A stretch of DNA of 64,000 bases, taken from the NCBI GenBank assembly GCA_013115145.1, contig JAAPAO010000014.1, positions 1 through 64,000 on the forward strand. Reading direction: 5' to 3'. The position numbers were made by a program, and so were the translations under genes. Source of the stretch: Perkinsus chesapeaki ATCC PRA-425 (lineage: Eukaryota > Protista > Perkinsozoa). This document shows positions 5,112-17,000 of the stretch, piece after piece; positions within the stretch are counted from its first letter, which is position 1; each line of letters opens with the position of its first letter. The notes below the pieces were generated by a model, which worked only from the letters and a program-made list of their open reading frames with translations, made no database searches and had not been told where the DNA came from.

Positions 5112-7470
5112 TCAGTGCATAGATTGCCGAGCCCCGGAGACACCGAGAGCTGGTGTAGCTGAAAGAGACGACTGGGAACTAGAAATTACATGAAGAATGC
5201 CCTCCGCAGTCCTCGCAGTTTCGAAATATAAAAAAAGCAAAACGAACACACCATACTTAACAAACGTATTTGAGAAGGGAGGGAACATATGCGGGATCCC
5301 CATTCAAAAGATCACCAGTTTCTCTGCCGTCTCGTCCCAGTCGTTCCAGAACCACGAAATAGTGCTCAGACGAAAATTGGAGTCTCTAATGCATTGGATA
5401 AAGATGCAAATCGCTTCGGCACAGAGAGAGTTGCGGTTCAAGTTGAGCGCCACCATGGCACAGTGTGGCTTAGAGACTGCGTGACAGAACTGCTGGATCT
5501 CTGAGGTTTCCATCATCTCGCCTGCCAAAGGGAGGGGGTATCAAAAACGTAAGCATAGAGAGAGTATGAACCCGAAAAACGGACCAGACTAGGAACGTAT
5601 GCGAAGGAGCTCAAAACAGCCCCTCACTGTACGAGTCTTAGAACTTTATGGAGGTGATAATATTAACCAGTGCAGGAGCTATCCTAACGCCCAGTAAATG
5701 GCCGATCGCCACCGCAGGTAACCATCTCACCTATGCCGTTTGCCTCCAAATTGAGGTGTGTTATCCTACAGCAGCCGGAATTTATGAACTTAGTCAACGC
5801 TCGGATACCTTGCCATTTGACATGGTTGCACCTACGGAGTGCAATGGTTGAGCATCGAAATATCTATAGTTCGACACCAGTGTCGAGTCTCGAACTTCAA
5901 GAACCGCCGACTGCTCCTTCGCTGCTCACCTCAAGTCAAGTACTGAGATCTGGTTCGACGGGTTTCTCGAGAGGGCCTCCAAGAGAAGTTCAAGAGCGTC
6001 GTCCTTAATTCGCATTTTCCCAAGGTGTCTGAAGTATCCAAATTAATCAGCTACTAGCGTAATATATGTCAGCACGGTCCGTGCTGTACGGAGCAACTCC
6101 TCTGACAGGAGCGACAGCTCTCACACTGACATGGCTACAGATGCCCCACACGTACAGGCTCCTCAGTGTCGTATTGTTTAGGAGCATACGCGCCATGTGC
6201 TCGAAGAGAAGTAACGAGTTGGTATGATTCTCCAATCGTGGATTAGATATATCTAACTTCTCTAGGCAGACTGGTTGGCCATTGGCCCGTAGGGGATCCA
6301 TCATATTAATTATATCATGGATGGCATCATAGCCCAAGTCGCACGAACCCAGTGAGAGCCTCCTTAAACCTGATGCAGGGACTATTCGGGCCATCTAAAG
6401 GTTATAGAGTACGACAGAGGTTACACAACGAAGTAATATCAGTTAAGAGCCGAGTAAACGACGACACTTCTTAGCTTATCCATGACGAACTGTTGACTTG
6501 TGGCATGAGACTCATGCAAAACCCATAGTCCCTAGCTAAGTCTCAATTCTACCTAGCCGATAAGTTCAAGCAAAGGGAACATACCAGCTTTGAAAATGTT
6601 AGGTTCATCCGACGTAGAGTTCTGAGAGTTCATTGAACGCAGCCACCTAAGAGCTGTTGATGATCTGCGAGAGCCGCATGTACTTTGCAATAGCGACCCC
6701 GGCGTCTGTTCCAATAGCATTGTCGCTCAAATCGAGCTCTCCCAACTCGCATTGTGAGTTTCTAAGAGGTACACGTGAGACGGGGTTTGATCATGAAAGC
6801 AGCAGGAAGGCACCTACTTGATAGCTTCCAATACCTTGAAAGCTCCATCCTTGCCGAGCAGGCACCCACGAAGCCTGATTAACCGTGTATTACCTACAGA
6901 TCGATTGGGACATTATGCGACGTAACACACAACAACGCACGTGTGATGAGAGATGCGACGGCCGTGCAGCCATCATCCTTGATGGGATTGTGTGACAAAT
7001 CAATAAATCCCACACTCGTGCTTGATTTCTGCAGCGCTTGGCATATCAGGAGACATTGAATGTCAGAAAGCTTGTCGCCATGTTCACGCTGGTCACCTAG
7101 AACAATGCCAGAGACGCAGAGCGCCAAATATGGACAAACCGAGCGTGCGAAAGGGGATATTCCCAGCGATAAATTATCACTAATACGTGTGGCTTCCAAC
7201 CCCACGAATAGCTGACTCCGGAATCTACAATTTATCTCACCTCGGAATCTCAGTGTTATGTCACTGTCGGTATGGCCTTCACAGGAAGTTTCAATCGCAT
7301 CGTTCACCGATTTCAGAACTGGCAGGTTATTCTCTCTACAGAGTTCGTGGTATCTTCATAGACATGATGGATATAGGAGTGGGATATATTCAGGGCTACA
7401 TGGAAAGCGGGTTTGATTGATCAAACTGGTTATCACGGTCCAAGGCCGGACCATCACCCGTCGTTGCAGT
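5112..7470 (-). CDS. Multi-exon RNI-like leucine-rich repeat protein, resembling LRRC34
   Basis: Exon translations contain RI-type LRR units: VGFIDLSHNPIKDDGCTAVASLI, LRRLSLGSCDLGYDAI, LEKLDISNPRL, MVALNLNRNSLCAEAI. GT-AG introns lie between them. Start and stop exons are not resolved. Confidence 0.7.
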
Positions 7471-8078: not shown

Positions 8079-10672
8079 TTATAGCCCGACGGCAGACTTA
8101 TAAGATTCGCTACGCTCTTGGTGATGGGCTACTGCATGGAAACCATTGAGAATTCCATCTACGCTTGTGGCGTTAAGAATGGCCTCGGCCACAGCAGGGC
8201 ACTCTCGCGCAAGCTCATCGACAACCTAAAAATCAAACAGCATCTCGGCGAACTAGAACTAGTGATTATTAGCATAGCAGTGCTTACCAGCAAGAATATC
8301 CATTTACCAACGCCATTTCCATGCCAGGCTACAGGTAGCCTATATTCGCTACCGCTAAGCCTTCGGCGGATTTCGCAGCCCCGAATATCATAGAGCCCGA
8401 GGGTTTCATTGAAGAGGCCAAAGTCGTCGCTGATAGTGCAGCATGGCTGTTGTGCACAAGGGGGCTTCCAGCCGTCCGGACATGCCACTGGGACGGTTTC
8501 GATAAAGTTACCGAACATGACTTGGTGATAATCTAATGCAATCAGCTGAGAGTGGCTCCAGTAATACTCGAAGAAAAGCCTTTGATCGGATTTGAAGTCC
8601 GAAGAATTGGCGAAGTTGATGACCCAGATAAGCATACTTATCAATGCTGACCTCTCCCCAATATAGGCACCAGCATTGAGGAAGCGACTGTTCGTTGGAG
8701 CTTTGGGAAATCGACCGATTTCTTCCTCGTTGCATTCATTCGCCCCGCCCCAGCCACATAGCTGTTCGGTCGACATGACAATGGGTTTGTCGAATGCGGC
8801 GAAAAGTCTTTTGATGTACTCATCAGGAGCGAACTCTTTGCCATTAGAGACAGAAGCTAAGTCGTTGAATACAACGTCCATGCCATCAACCATCATATAT
8901 AAGGTATCATCTGGAGGTTGAGCTTCCAGATAGTTCAGATAGGATTTCACCCGCACATTCATACCACTCCACTGCGCGCCACTCAGTTCAGCACATGTAT
9001 TGATGATATCAATAGGGGACGTCACTTGAACTAACCGAAATACGGGCAGATCAGCTACTGTCTGGTCCTGATCGGTCACACAGGTCACAGCTTTCACAGC
9101 GCCCTTCTGCCGAAATAACGGTTGCGGCCGCGGTTTCCGCAGGGTCTGCTGTAGGCGGACATACCACCAAGTTTGCATATGCAGGAACGAGGACTGTAGC
9201 TTCGCCGCAAAGGCTCGGGCCTCCTTAAGGTCGCGCTCAAGCTGTGATGATTCCTCCTGCGTACTGCTAGTCTTCGAAGTATCTTTCCCGTTCAACAAGA
9301 TACGCGTGGCATCACTGGTCCCTTCCATGATATTGGCGTCCGCATCAAATCCACGTTTCCCGTGTATTATAGGGTAGGCTCGTCGGGCGATGTAGTCCGC
9401 AATTGGTTTCTTGTATTCACTGTTCTTTACTTCAGGTGTTAACCAAAGATATTCTTGAATGACTGTACGGTCTAGGAAGGGGTACCGGGCTTCTATGCCG
9501 AAAGCACCCGCCACCATTTCTTCTTTCATCAAGTAATCACGTTGCGTTCCCATAAAGAAGGACTGCCAAGGGAATATGTCCCCAAGACTATCCGGGAACA
9601 GTCCACCAAAATCGCTGTGGGGGAAAATGCGGGTACCATTGAAACCATAGTCGCTAATGGTTTCATCTGCACCCGTGCCGCTTAAGTACAGAGAACGCCC
9701 CTCTTCCCGAGCTAGTTCACATATAAACGCCAACCCAGAGGCCGCCGGATCATCACCCATCATACCGATTCTCCCCCTTTGTGAGTATCTAAATGGTTCG
9801 CCACGCTCTTGCAAAATGCTATGGCTATTATCCAGCTCTCGCTCCGTTAGGATAAAGAGGCTGGAGTCTGATACGTTTCGACTGTATTGTGCTCGAGCTT
9901 CTAGAATAGCCAAATCCTCTTGAGAGAAGATTGAATAAGCTGCATGTGGCAAGCCGATGCTCACCAAAGCAGCTTGAATGGCGCCACTATCATAGCCGCT
10001 GGAAAGGCCTAGGAAGGCTGTCCCGGCTCTCGCATAACGGACCCGTTTTTGAACGGCGGCAGTGAAGGCACGATCCCAGCTCAACGTGTCCGTTTTGAAC
10101 TGCCGCAAGTCGAACTCGAACGTTGGACCCAGATATCTCTCATGGCATCCACCTTGTAACGATATCTCAAGGACAGTGTTGGGAAGGACTTGGCGTGAGT
10201 CCAGCTCTAGATGTGTCAGAGAGGATTGGTAAGTAGCCACATGAACTCCACGAGAGTCACATGCATAACTTAGCGGTTTTGTACCGAAAGGATCGGAGGC
10301 GAGCACAACGACTGCTCTTGAGAAGTCGTAAATAGCTATGGCGAACTCGCCGTCAAGAAGTCTGGCGAATAAAGGTGCACCATACGTTTTATAGAGCGAG
10401 AGTAGAATCTCCCCATCACTGAGGCATGCGGGACACAAGTCTTTATAGTTATAGATCTCGCCGTTGAACACCGCCGCTATGGCCTGATCATCTGATAGGA
10501 ATGGCTGCCGCGTTAGAGGTCCAGTCATATGGAGAAGGTCGTGAATGAAGACATAATCGCCGATCCGGACCTCCGAATGATGGTCGGGGCCTCTGTAACG
10601 TTGACGCTCAGATACTTGAGAAAGATCAAATATCAAGGATAGAGTGGCAGCCACGACCAGGAAGCTGCACAT
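8079..10672 (-). CDS. Asparagine-synthetase-like (class II glutamine amidotransferase + ATP-PPase) protein fused to a PLOD/LH3-type GT-A glycosyltransferase domain
   Basis: N-terminal MC (Ntn nucleophile), RGPD, FNGEIYNY, SDGE, LDGEFA, DPFGTKPL, PP-loop LSSGYDSG, SGTGADE, EARYPFLD. C-terminal domain: VDGMDVVF (DxD), STEQLC, FLNAGAYIG, SDQRLF, WHGNG. One predicted 62-nt intron 8226..8287 (GTAAG...TTTTTAG) gives a last exon VVDELARECPAVAEAIL... with TAA at 8079-8081. Confidence 0.85.
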
Positions 10673-11275
10673 TGATATCGACTCTGCACATAAATAGCTG
10701 CGAGCGGATCAGTAATCGTTCCTCAGTAAACTCCGTACGAAAGCCTATTCAACCTGGCTGGAGCCTTCCCGCTCCAACGGTTGAAATTCAACTCGATTCC
10801 GCAGGAACAATATTGATCGAGCAGTTTCCGTGAATTCAATTTCGTCACTATTGGAGCACGCATTGGTTTCCATGGCAAGCTCTTGTGACGCGTCTCTAGG
10901 ATAGAAAGTTGAGGGCTTCCCTTCTAAGGATGGGGTGAAATTTAGTGTGCCTACTTGTTCTGCATGTTAGCAACTCAACTCAACATCGTTACTTTCAAGA
11001 AGGATCGAATCGCAACGCAATCGCAGGCTTCATGTAGTATGCATAAAAGTCTCAGTTGTGTGCTCAAACTTAACTGAACAAACTGACACGATACTCGATA
11101 TCTCCTGATCACGACGTTGTGGGTATGGCCCGGAGTTAATGCGGCTTCGTACCTCTGAGTTTCAAGGCGAAAGCTATCTCGGAACAAACTGACGATTTGC
11201 TTTCCCTCATGAAGATCGGGCGTGGCTCTCGTTTCAGCGACACTGGTTCTTTAGGGCTCTCAGTGAGACCAAACT

Positions 11276-11564
11276 ATGTTCAGTTAGCCTTGCTTTCTCA
11301 TCCGCGATAACCTATTGTGTGTTACCTTATTGGCAGCTGAAGACTCTCATGCTCTCGATGGCGCTCCTCGGCAGTCCCAAACTGGGCCGCCGTAAAAAGC
11401 CTCTGGACTGTGCCTATAGGAAGCACACGTCTTACATGACGGCCATAAATCTTCGAAAAGCTTCGCGAAGACTAGCTAATACTCGAGCTTCAAAGCAAGA
11501 AGTCACCGTGGCACTCATCGACACTGGTGTGAATTGCGATCATCCCGACACTAGAATCTGTTGA
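11276..11564 (+). pseudogene. Truncated subtilisin (S8) paralog fragment
   Basis: HTSYMTAINLRKASRRL...EVTVALIDTGVNCDHPD matches the adjacent gene (QTKYLSAIKIPDAWQRL...EVGVAVIDTGVNCDYPD). It stops immediately afterwards and the leader region is disrupted. Confidence 0.8.
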
Positions 11565-14028: not shown

Positions 14029-17000
14029 TTATGCGGCAATCGCGCACAATTGAACGATATTGTTATACTCCATGGATCAGTTTGACGATGGGCGGTGGGA
14101 TGCACCTTACCGTTGCCAAGCCCGCCATGGTACTAAAAGATCTATCAGCACACGTTATACATAACGTGCACAGGTTAAAAGATACGTGTTCGCCTATTCA
14201 GCAGACACTGCAAATTGATCAAACTCCGGCTATCGACTTGTTGGTAGAAACATTTCGAGGTAGTTATTCACCATGGGAGCCAACCTCCTTTAACCGGGAT
14301 AGAACTCTCCTCTTCAGAAACTGTCTCGCGGTAACTGAAAAAAACACTACGGGAGCTACTCCGGCTCAACGGCAGGTGGTTTCTGACCATTTCAGACCCT
14401 TAGCTGCCTCGACGGCTTCCGACACTCTCGATAATATAGCATCCACTTGCTCTCGTTCCTGTTTACCAGGGGCGTCCTAAAACAGGATAAAGTCGAAGAA
14501 ATATGAGCTAATTGTTCCCAACCGACCGAGTGCTCGCCTCCTTCTGCATATAATTGAAACTCCATAATGTCTTGCAGTGTTGGCTCGAGCGTGGCCACGA
14601 ACGAAAAATTCGAATCGATGTCGCCCGAGCCGGACGCTACCACACCTGATGCGTCTTGCAGGATGCTGCTAATCTGAAGGAGGCGCTTAAAGTACCAAAT
14701 ACGACATCTGATGCCAAACTACTGCTTCGAAGTTACGCTTGATCGGGTCGATGAAATTACTTGTCAAAGCTTGTCGTACTCGACCAAACCAAAGGGAATA
14801 GAGCGCTCGGAGAAACCTGGCAAACCGTGGGGAGTGCAAAGCTGCCAAGGACAGAATCATTTACTTTTCGACTGCAGACCGCTCTAACGAGTACACCTTA
14901 TTCCCACGATTGAACAACGACGGATTTTTAGTCATATGGACTTCCCTAAAATGACCGAGCAATCGCTAACTGTGACCGTCCAGTAAGAGCCGCTCACTGC
15001 CTTGCAGTAGCCAGTATCAGTTCCTTCAGTTTCCCCTCTTCCAAGTAGCACGGATGGCAGTCATCATCCAACTGGCCGTATACGGCAGAGAAGGTAGCGC
15101 TCACTCGGCGCCGTGTTATGGCATTGGCTCTAGATTTTCGGAGGAAATGTTGGACAGTTCGGTACCACTTCTCCAAGGCCTCTAGAGTAGATTGATACGC
15201 CTGTGTTCGGGATGAGTTGTACCTAGGCCAAGGCTAACTTCGAAACTCGAGGTCGAGCAGCTTACTGATCATTCCACTCTTTCAGCGCGCCCTCTGAAGT
15301 GTTTCGCAAGAACTCTAATACAGGCTGATTCGATACATCTTCGAACGTTACCGAGTCCTGAAGGAAACGTACGGAACTGCAATGCATACGCCATTCAAAT
15401 GGGCGCATGTTGCGAGCTATCGGGCAACAGCTGGCCAGGTCACCTCCGACGGCATGGTTGTCTCTAACCTCGTTGTGCAGCACTCATCCTCCCCGGGTAG
15501 CTCCGTAGTAGCAGATACGATTTTCTAAAAGATACAACTGGCAAGGACAGCTCCTACTCGGGGAACGGCTTACACTCTCCACGTCCGCTAAAAACGTTAC
15601 AAAGACAGCGCGGAGCTCGGATGTTCTATCAGAGATGAGAGACTGCTGATCGCAAGGCCCTGTTAATGCTTTCACTTCCGCCATATAATCTCGAATCTGA
15701 GCCCATCTGTCAGCTAGCAGACACGTCATAGCAAAGGTTACCATTGCTTTAAGTTGGAGCAGCGCCAGGTCGATGCTCCGTGGTAGCATAGACGTCCAGG
15801 CTCTGCCGAGGATACATGGGGACACGGAATCTGACAAGTGGGCAACGATAGGAAAGGATCCACTTCCAACTAGAAGACGAAGACTAGCAGGTAGAGAACA
15901 GAGTCATACTATACTTCAGGGGGTAACTCCATGAGGACCGCGAGAATTGTTACCAAAATGAATTTACAATTACGCAAGAACGCATCTTGTAGCAGCGCTG
16001 TAAGCCCTTTTTGATTCCTTTAACTAGAGCAGATTTGGTGGCGACCGCCGATCTGTGCATTCTATCTCTCTTGTTAGCGAAGCAAGCCTGGGAAATGAAA
16101 ATTCAGAGTACCGATTGGCAGTAAGAGAGCTGGCCTGGAGCACGGCGTCAAACACGATTCTGTTCGGGCTTATCCCACTTCAACTTACTTTTAATTTGCC
16201 CCATTTCAACTAAAGCCTTCATTTCTCTATCCCAAGCCTTGACAGTCATGTTTCTCAGCGAGGCAGCAGCCGGCCAATGCACTCCGTAGAGCAATGAACA
16301 TATCTAACAGCGCTGGCAGAAATGGCCAACCTCCCCAACGGAGTAATCCCACTTCTGCAAACCAAGGCTGTTCTTGCAGGGACGCCATAATGGTGCTTGT
16401 TATAGGACTGTTCGACTTCTTTCCGAATAGGGAGTGCATCTTCCATTTACCGTATCTGTCCGGGGAGCAGTTGTTGGCCCCGCGAGGAAAATGTACATTT
16501 CTCACATGCCCAAAACGCCAAGTCGACTAGCTGCAGCCAGACAGCTTTCCCTTTGCTCGCCCGTGTAGGTGTCATTGTGTAAGAGACCGGTGAACGCTTC
16601 CTGGAGTGAAAACCTGAAGGACCAAGTCGGGGTCCAAGTTCGACACGGGCGTGTGAGCTGCATGCAACAGACGAGGTAAGAGGCGAAGTTTAGGGAATGT
16701 TCAAATGCTTTCATGAACGTCGAGTAGGCTGATACCGTATCAGTGATACGTAATAAAAATACAAGTACATAATGTACATTTTTGAAACCCATTACCAATA
16801 AACTATTACTTACCTTATTGCACTGACAAACGAGCGACGTCCTGCCTCGGGTAACGAGTATCCAGGAAGTTTGTCTATGCAGTTTCCAACTATCCACAAG
16901 TTCTCCGCCGTCAGACAGCCATCTGCCTGTAGGGCCTTCAGCAGCAACAACAAGGAGGGGAAGTCAGAGGCACTTGGCCGTTTAGAGGCATCAACGACCA

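Follow-up and report, generated by a model that had tools for sequence, protein, structure and literature searches.

An AsnB-like amidotransferase joined to an LH3-type glycosyltransferase in Perkinsus chesapeaki: a predicted bifunctional enzyme of glycoconjugate biosynthesis with relatives in marine viruses

Background

AsnB-like amidotransferases and LH3-type glycosyltransferases (GT) are each well known, and the protein described here joins both. WbpS-type AsnB-like enzymes make uronamide sugars for O-antigens and N-glycans; they are held to convert UDP-HexNAcA to the uronamide, a reaction believed to take place on the nucleotide sugar ahead of its transfer (PMC6025236, PMC2615507). In the Mimivirus collagen glucosyltransferase R699, which is related to human LH3 (PLOD3), residues D83 and D86 are Mn2+ ligands, and H216, N218 and K222 are catalytically required (PMC12279948). 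Also in giant viruses, a "Mimiviridae-specific" glutamine-dependent asparagine synthetase (AsnS) has been described as a metagenomic bait (PMC6163669). In this work we analyzed a gene of the protist Perkinsus chesapeaki ATCC PRA-425 that encodes an AsnB-like amidotransferase and an LH3-type GT in a single chain. The gene is located in a stretch of 64,000 nucleotides (assembly GCA_013115145.1, contig JAAPAO010000014.1, positions 1 to 64,000 of the forward strand), which is referred to below as the window.

Both domains of the protein were already known, and it is present in the databases as a hypothetical protein with the corresponding Pfam matches. We found no description of the fusion, or of the junction between signal peptide and catalytic cysteine that occurs in several homologues. 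The same holds for the confinement to viruses and eukaryotes of the clade to which the N-terminal half (N-half) belongs, whose AsnB-like members have a rebuilt donor site and a rebuilt acceptor site. The clade of the N-half is uncharacterised and very common in marine viruses. From the analyses presented here we conclude that the fusion is real and that its product is probably a single-chain enzyme with two functions in the biosynthesis of glycoconjugates, both activities being predicted from sequence.

Results and discussion

The fusion gene and its product

The gene consists of two exons on the minus strand, as are all the features of the gene given below, and its coding region (843 codons and a stop) extends over positions 8079..10672 of the window, according to the open reading frame (ORF) listing and the sequence. 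The spliced translation is residue-for-residue identical to FOL47_001616 (P0001), annotated by NCBI as a hypothetical protein of P. chesapeaki. Exon 1 (8288..10672) is an uninterrupted frame of codons 1-795 that begins with the ATG at 10672; it is followed by a phase 0 intron of 62 nt (8226..8287, GTAAGC...TTTTAG) and by exon 2 (8079..8225), which includes codons 796-843 and the TAA stop at 8081-8079. This intron had been proposed in the initial annotation of the sequence, and it is borne out at 8287..8226, given that its removal restores a conserved tail. The tail encoded by exon 2 is found in P. olseni, in P0004 and in the dinoflagellate orthologues, holds the invariant Cys804, and forms the helical C-terminus of the GT half, AlphaFold2 (AF2) placing helices at residues 248-303 of the modelled GT segment; the tail that would result from reading through the unspliced intron has no conservation in the orthologues.

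At the start of this gene, the octamer ATGTGCAG, which comprises the start and the Cys codon, is present twice, 20 nt apart (10665-10692, minus strand), and its upstream copy starts a short out-of-frame upstream ORF immediately 5' of the real start.

In the product, Pfam profiles identified GATase_7 at amino acids (aa) 54-152 (E 6e-18; GATase_6 was also matched), Asn_synthase at aa 377-467 (E 9.5e-9) and GT_PLOD (PF25342) at aa 570-723 (E 6.4e-8; score 32.5 bits, cut-off 27), and the matches pass the curated cut-offs throughout. Profile and fold searches concur in both assignments of the initial annotation, an AsnB-like glutaminase with a PP-loop synthetase and a PLOD/LH3-type GT-A domain, and every motif listed there was located: MCSF (1-4), HDLLHMTG (44-51), SSGYDS (224-229), DGMD (596-599), WHGNG (783-787) and a Cys-rich insert (731-745). 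The motifs do differ from those of AsnB, as was stated then; they are not peculiar to this gene and mark, almost without variation, an entire clade. The conserved beta1 strand VKAVTCVTD places the start of the GT domain at about aa 524, and therefore the linker between the two halves spans approximately aa 468-523 (9104..9271). The linker is poorly conserved and its length is very variable between orthologues; at the end of the N-half model, the predicted local distance difference test score (pLDDT) falls below 50.

The single-chain fusion itself was also recovered outside this genome: a polypeptide with both domains is conserved in Perkinsus, Symbiodiniaceae and Amoebophrya. The same architecture is present in P. 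olseni, Effrenium, Amoebophrya and complete transcriptome ORFs, and the same domain order occurs in at least 19 proteins, complete transcriptome ORFs among them. A longer variant is encoded in a metagenome contig of ORFan genes (P0064, L006:4969-8967), in which the same short AsnB-like domain, GT_PLOD and GT25 are part of one chain; GT25 is the family of the collagen galactosyltransferases. According to the Atlas clusters, fusions of GT25 and GT_PLOD, with or without a 2-oxoglutarate (2OG) oxygenase or a methyltransferase, are common in Uroviricota, and these phage proteins look like a collagen-type toolkit for hydroxylysine (Hyl)-Gal-Glc.

The N-half retains the amidotransferase fold with rebuilt donor and acceptor sites

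The N-half includes a class II glutaminase domain with an N-terminal Cys (aa 1 to ~195, 10088..10672), which is supported by GATase_7 and GATase_6 and by AF2 pLDDT values above 90, and a PP-loop adenylating (synthetase) domain (aa ~196-467, 9272..10087), which is supported by Asn_synthase and by the 1ct9 profile (E 5.7e-33). The AF2 model of aa 1-475 has a mean pLDDT of 92.5; its best Foldseek matches were E. coli AsnB (1ct9, E 1e-24) and human ASNS, with a TM-score (TM) of 0.72 and ~20% identity, followed by TsnB9, beta-lactam synthetase and carbapenam synthetase. With AsnB and ASNS (1CT9, 6GQ3) the N-half shares the two-domain fold, the N-terminal Cys, the S-x-G-x-D-S PP-loop and the GxExRxPFLD motif; in contrast, it is shorter at the C-terminus, where the last ~100 residues of AsnB are missing. 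The N-half also failed both NCBIfam AsnB equivalogs, TIGR01536 and PRK09431, with 122 bits against 267.1 and 96.8 bits against 499.

The residues of 36 clade members were compared with a baseline of 92 AsnB-like ORFs from the closest matches in 185,579 bacterial and archaeal species genomes (24-28% identity). The glutaminase residues of the protein are kept: Cys2, which follows Met1 and is invariant in 36/36 clade members, Arg27, the oxyanion pair Asn70-Gly71, Glu72 and Asp86; in the Cys1 numbering of AsnB, the residues kept are Cys1, Arg30, Asn74, Gly75, Glu76 and Asp98. Of these, we take N74 and G75 of AsnB to be the oxyanion pair and D98 to bind the alpha-amino group of glutamine. The PP-loop SSGYDS (aa 224-229, 9986..10003) aligns with SGGLDS of AsnB, its Ser, Gly, Asp and Ser being invariant in the clade, and the residues corresponding to Ser346, Gly347, Asp351, Glu352 and Tyr357 are kept along with the GxExRxPFLD motif.

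Other positions have been replaced. AsnB Arg49, which presumably binds the alpha-carboxylate of glutamine, corresponds to Leu46; this position is Leu in 35/36 clade members whereas Arg is found in 92/92 of the prokaryotic proteins. Further clade-fixed changes in the glutaminase half are found at D54, M120, E160 and K162. In the synthetase half, the equivalent of AsnB Glu348 is Thr333, and the position is occupied by Gln, Ser or Thr across the clade, never by an acidic residue, versus Asp or Glu in 69/92 of the baseline; the TTIR segment of AsnB is replaced by G-D-D-P, and the conserved acid at 279 is reversed in charge to Arg260, which is invariant in the clade. An aromatic-rich insert, FNGxKxxPHSxFGGLFPxxLxxIFPWxSFYxGTQ (aa 344-377, 9542..9643), occupies the AsnB segment that leads to Asp384/Arg387; from the clade alignment it is clade-wide, and it is absent from the prokaryotic AsnB-like proteins. 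On the basis of mutagenesis and structural work, we take E348, the T322/T323/R325 (TTIR) segment and D384 of AsnB to be functional or aspartate-site residues. The acceptor site has been rebuilt, so that free aspartate is most likely not what the enzyme amidates.

The C-half is an LH3/R699-type glycosyltransferase with ten invariant cysteines

The GT-A domain (aa 524-795, 8288..9103, continuing into exon 2) was modelled by AF2 as aa 540-843 with a mean pLDDT of 88. In Foldseek its matches were human LH3, over the GT domain (E 5e-10), and R699 of Mimivirus (E 4e-8), with TM 0.46-0.58; retaining GT-A members of families GT6 and GT8 came next. In profile searches the E values were 1.5e-17 for R699 and 2e-15 for LH3. 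All active-site motifs of these proteins (6FXK, 6WFV, 9DYT) are aligned in the GT half: DxxD, E..CW, FLNxG (FLNAG), DQ, LD, FxN (FGN) and HGNGxxK. The metal-binding motif D596-G-M-D599-V (8873..8887) aligns with D112/D115 of LH3 and D83/D86 of R699, and WHGNGVGK (aa 783-790, 8303..8326) with HGNGPTK of LH3 and H216/N218/K222 of R699. The metal ligands D596, D599 and H784 thus have counterparts in LH3 and R699, both Asp (D57 and D60 of the segment) being near-invariant, and the conserved E636, W641, D696, N786 and K790 align with E114, W118, D163, N218 and K222 of R699.

The GT half differs from LH3 and R699 in that it has an amidotransferase in front, and neither an accessory domain nor a lysyl-hydroxylase domain. 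In addition, the uridine-stacking Tyr of the DxYD motif (Y114 in LH3, Y85 in R699) is Met598 in this protein, and among the other fused proteins of eukaryotes the position holds Met, Leu, Ser, Ala or Thr, Met or Leu being the residues found in place of this Tyr in the comparison with LH3 and R699; the Tyr is retained only in the divergent P0061 and P0064. This replacement hints at a different donor nucleotide or sugar. A third difference is a Cys-rich insert of ~45 aa, absent from LH3 and R699, whose cysteines C731, C739, C744, C745 and C766 (aa 731-766, 8375..8482) are invariant in 19/19 fused homologues. The GT part is richer in Cys than the initial annotation had noticed, with 10 Cys invariant in the 19 proteins; all of these are in the GT half, the catalytic Cys being the sole invariant one of the N-half.

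Word-based searches with the GT half alone returned nothing but fused proteins and fragments. When 1.84 billion representatives were searched exhaustively with a profile, 3432 relatives were obtained, only 33 of them at E <=1e-30. The best tier was formed by fused proteins or plain fragments of them; the second tier, by stand-alone paralogues of 440-540 aa with a signal peptide, a coiled coil of ~100 aa and the same domain with all 10 Cys. In these paralogues (P0133, P0136, P0139, P0140 and P0147) the signal peptide and the coiled coil replace the AsnB-like half and the C-terminal tail is kept, but DxxD, SDQ and HGNG are degenerate; for this reason they are probably not enzymes, and we consider them probable secreted pseudo-glycosyltransferases. 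Since all 10 Cys persist in proteins that have lost the catalytic motifs, the cysteines would be structural, and the signal peptides indicate that in those paralogues the domain belongs to the secretory pathway. Hence, among the 1.84 billion representatives the catalytically intact Cys-rich GT subtype was found only in AsnB-like-fused proteins or their fragments, an argument for a functional coupling of the two activities.

The N-half belongs to a clade of short viral and eukaryotic proteins

The relatives of the N-half are short proteins of ~440 aa with the signature MCSF, HxLLxxTG and SSGYDS. At least 472 stretches of IMG/VR viral contigs encode them, and they are present in Synechococcus phage S-SCSM1, in contigs of giant-virus metagenome-assembled genomes and in Hyperionvirus; the clade is also expanded in dinoflagellate-type eukaryotes. 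In contrast, no close member of the clade was found in the 185,579 prokaryote species genomes scanned, only generic AsnB-like proteins with 24-28% identity which, unlike the clade, keep Arg49. The stand-alone proteins of marine cyanomyoviruses and giant viruses annotated as "asparagine synthase" (for example SSCSM1_130 of S-SCSM1, and Hyperionvirus21_27) are 41-45% identical to the N-half and share MCSF, HNLLxxTG, SSGYDS and SDYGFNG; they differ from the fusion protein in having ~440 aa and no GT_PLOD, the giant-virus forms carrying other C-terminal extensions.

A tree was rooted on E. coli AsnB, which lies extremely far from all members of the clade. In this tree the eukaryotic sequences are united in one clade with support (SH-aLRT 98), nested among viral lineages and beside the group that contains Hyperionvirus. 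The GT-fused forms occupy several subclades of the eukaryotic clade and are interleaved with non-fused paralogues of 550-715 aa; the tree comes from a quick search and has long branches, so that it does not fix the order of events. In PHROGs the N-half corresponded to one family of unknown function, and the GT half had no match. For the C-terminal extensions of the long forms that lack GT_PLOD (P0114, P0088, P0059, P0035 and P0026), Pfam gave no match and Atlas gave weak GT-like leads (scores 0.79-0.82). The "Mimiviridae-specific AsnS" mentioned above may be this same clade.

Viral relatives are located in glycan gene clusters

In phage S-SCSM1, the AsnB-like gene is flanked by glycosyltransferase and methyltransferase genes, in a run that begins with GDP-mannose dehydratase and GDP-fucose synthase. 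In the marine phage version, represented by at least 24 contigs, it is located between a TOD1_MUCI70-type GT-like gene and a methyltransferase, with GT10, GT11, GT2, GT25, O-FucT, DegT and four dehydratase/epimerase genes around it; fucosyltransferases also belong to these dense glycan clusters. When 35 dereplicated viral loci were considered, the gene directly upstream was TOD1_MUCI70 in 9, and a methyltransferase, Nucleotid_trans, GT8, epimerase, acetyltransferase or sulfotransferase gene in the others, so that its product is either GT-like or an enzyme that modifies sugars. Members of the UDP-glucose/GDP-mannose dehydrogenase (Ugd) family were 5 of the 77 neighbours in eight diverse viral loci, and a Ugd-family ORF was found 0.6-6.5 kb from the AsnB-like gene in 22/80 viral loci (11/36 after dereplication), all of them in glycan clusters. 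This context argues for a glycan role, and it gives partial support to a uronic acid as the substrate.

Most of these Ugd-family ORFs are short, for example those at L044:8527-9300 and L043:8654-9421 and the one located ~2.2 kb upstream of the AsnB-like gene in L054; the short ORFs cover only the NAD-binding and central domains. In another viral contig (L028), two divergent AsnB-like copies (10001-11329 and 14413-15753) are present ~3 kb apart in the same glycan cluster.

By context and by the proposed chemistry, amidation of a sugar carboxylate, the clade resembles the WbpS/WbmC-type proteins of bacterial O-antigen and N-glycan pathways, which are also AsnB-like amidotransferases encoded among glycan genes; a Ugd-family gene is close to ~30% of the viral relatives. 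In contrast, the bacterial proteins are stand-alone and have ~630 aa.

The catalytic cysteine and signal peptides

The initial annotation had pointed out an open puzzle: the catalytic Cys2 must be the free N-terminus, which speaks against a cleaved signal peptide, and yet the GT part is rich in Cys, as lumenal domains are. For the family as a whole the puzzle is eased. Seven homologues from different subclades (P0008, P0010, P0011, P0024, P0061, P0096 and P0098) have no Met before the catalytic Cys; instead, they carry a signal-peptide-like presequence of 17-69 aa with a hydrophobic core and small residues at -3/-1 that ends exactly at the Cys, as in MLLLAAAAASTWTGVSA followed by CSF, or in a presequence ending in LLLAPSVGA followed by CSF. 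This suggests that in these homologues signal peptidase, or autoprocessing, may expose the nucleophile in the secretory pathway; in this family, therefore, a lumenal location does not conflict with a free N-terminal Cys. For the P. chesapeaki protein the puzzle persists, given that it starts with Met-Cys, as do P0004, P0009, P0012, P0015 and P0016. A hidden upstream exon encoding a signal peptide was considered for it and rejected: an in-frame stop is found 13 codons upstream of the ATG and the Met directly precedes the Cys, so there is no room for such an exon.

One of the presequence homologues, P0098 (an MMETSP transcript, 947 aa), has a signal peptide, the AsnB-like domain and a C-terminal EamA-type (drug/metabolite transporter) domain, which suggests a membrane-tethered amidotransferase, either lumenal or extracellular.

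Proposed function and alternative explanations

The gene structure, the two folds, the catalytic motifs in both halves, the conservation of the fusion and the glycan clusters of the viral relatives are what the analysis shows, whereas the carboxylate that is amidated, the step that comes first, the sugars that serve as donor and acceptor, and the compartment are inferred. In the reading that we favour, with somewhat better than even confidence, the N-half amidates a carboxylate other than that of aspartate, most plausibly on a nucleotide-activated uronic acid, using ammonia from its own glutaminase, and the C-half is an active retaining GT that uses or extends the same glycoconjugate, perhaps a sugar chain of the cell surface. 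The glutaminase site, with its N-terminal Cys, would release ammonia from glutamine, and the PP-loop domain would adenylate the carboxylate of the acceptor, most plausibly the C-6 carboxylate of a uronic acid that is probably nucleotide-activated, so that the product would be a uronamide. The metal-dependent retaining GT-A domain would move a sugar to a glycoconjugate acceptor, and this sugar may be the one freshly amidated by the N-half. Following the WbpS precedent, in which amidation is believed to precede transfer, a donor that is first amidated and then transferred seems at least as likely as amidation of a glycan already built by the GT.

Several points weigh against this reading. The substrate of the N-half is assigned through guilt by association. 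With Arg49 lost, the amide donor may be something other than glutamine, or glutamine may be bound by an unfamiliar route. The viral Ugd-like ORFs are mostly short (255-283 aa) and without the C-terminal nucleotide-sugar domain, and ~70% of the viral loci have no Ugd-like gene nearby. The characterised LH3-type GTs act on protein-bound Gal-Hyl and not on uronic-acid glycans. In 80 viral loci, no ORF up to 10 kb away from the AsnB-like gene matched a hidden Markov model of the GT half, even at E 10, the viral partner GTs being of families other than the Perkinsus type; the GT half likewise showed no similarity to the phage TOD1_MUCI70-like gene upstream of the AsnB-like gene (BLASTP E 3.5). Regarding the compartment, the 10 invariant Cys point to the secretory pathway, where a synthetase that depends on ATP and glutamine would be unusual, and the P. 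chesapeaki protein has no signal peptide. Finally, two small RNA runs labelled P. chesapeaki contained almost none of the words of the stretch; since no listed RNA run holds it, splicing and expression of the gene in this species are predicted from conservation.

That the fusion is a gene-model artefact merging two adjacent genes is hardly credible: models in these genomes do merge neighbours, as in P. olseni P0002, which runs into a leucine-rich repeat (LRR) protein, and in P0005 and P0019, with their long N-terminal extensions, but here a single 795-codon exon encodes both halves, uninterrupted by any stop or intron, the order is the same in the 19 or more proteins mentioned above, and the intact GT subtype was not found alone in the profile search. 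The N-half could instead be a true glutamine-dependent asparagine synthetase merely tethered to the GT, for example for a local supply of Asn. The AsnB/ASNS fold and best matches, the intact glutaminase nucleophile and PP-loop, and the annotation of its relatives as "asparagine synthase", with the giant-virus gene treated as AsnS (PMC6163669), would be in keeping with this. We consider it quite unlikely, however, since the scores are far under both equivalog cut-offs, Arg49, the acidic 348 and TTIR are replaced, the Asp384 region is a clade-specific insert, the C-terminal ~100 aa of AsnB are missing, and the viral copies sit among glycosyltransferase genes rather than genes of amino-acid metabolism; the failed cut-offs, the two lost residues and the viral clusters favour the non-asparagine role that the initial annotation had advanced. 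Very unlikely, in our opinion, is that the N-terminal domain no longer uses free L-glutamine and hydrolyses another amide, or is a different Ntn hydrolase that feeds the synthetase with something else. The change of Arg49 (92/92 against Leu in 35/36) and the co-ordinated changes at D54, M120, E160 and K162 could be read in this way, but Cys1, Arg30, Asn74-Gly75, Glu76 and Asp98 are all kept, another basic residue such as the near-invariant Lys132 could take over the role of Arg49, and the context suggests no alternative donor.

It is also conceivable that both halves are directed to proteins, the GT acting, as LH3 and R699 do, on a secreted protein, collagen-like or not, at a residue that is hydroxylated or glycosylated, and the N-half amidating an Asp/Glu side chain or a C-terminus. 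The only characterised relatives of the GT half modify protein-bound Gal-Hyl, P0064 adds a domain of the collagen galactosyltransferase family, viral Atlas clusters join GT25, GT_PLOD and 2OG oxygenase, and AsnB-like enzymes can act on peptides, as illustrated by the match to a lasso-peptide cyclase in the NCBIfam search. Nevertheless, no collagen-like or oxygenase partner was seen beside the fusion gene, the viral contexts are rich in nucleotide-sugar enzymes, and we know of no precedent for an ammonia-using AsnB-like enzyme that amidates a protein carboxylate; overall we regard this explanation as unlikely.

Compatible with a glycan-directed enzyme, a broader proposal can be put forward, tentatively and with considerable doubt: the whole clade of the N-half would be a virus- and eukaryote-specific group of glycan amidotransferases rather than asparagine synthetases that, in some eukaryotic paralogues, has become a sugar-amidating machine of the endoplasmic reticulum or Golgi lumen, dependent on ATP and an amide donor and without the universal glutamine-binding Arg. 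In such paralogues signal peptidase itself would unmask the catalytic Cys, beside a disulfide-rich LH3-type GT, and the clade may include the "Mimiviridae-specific AsnS" marker gene.

If the N-half does amidate sugars, the "asparagine synthase" of cyanophages and giant viruses would have to be re-read as a glycan-tailoring gene, and Perkinsus, dinoflagellates and Amoebophrya would be expected to display amidated uronic acids, their charge neutralised, on their surfaces, with possible importance for host recognition and symbiosis. In that case the coupling of sugar modification and transfer could also be studied in the fusion as a compact test bed. The junction between signal peptide and Cys, and the lost Arg49, are testable oddities within a textbook enzyme class.

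Sequences flanking the fusion gene

The Perkinsus fusion gene itself has no informative neighbours. Downstream of it, an ORF at 6894-7307 (minus strand) has LRR-like sequence, with no Pfam match at E <=0.01; in the P. olseni model P0002 (760-1232) the orthologous fusion protein continues into an LRR_6 protein, so that either synteny is conserved or the P. olseni model is merged. On the other side, a short ORF at 11319-11564 (plus strand), also with no Pfam match at E <=0.01, contains "ALIDTGVNCDHPD", which recalls the Asp-box of subtilases, and could represent an exon of an adjacent protease gene.

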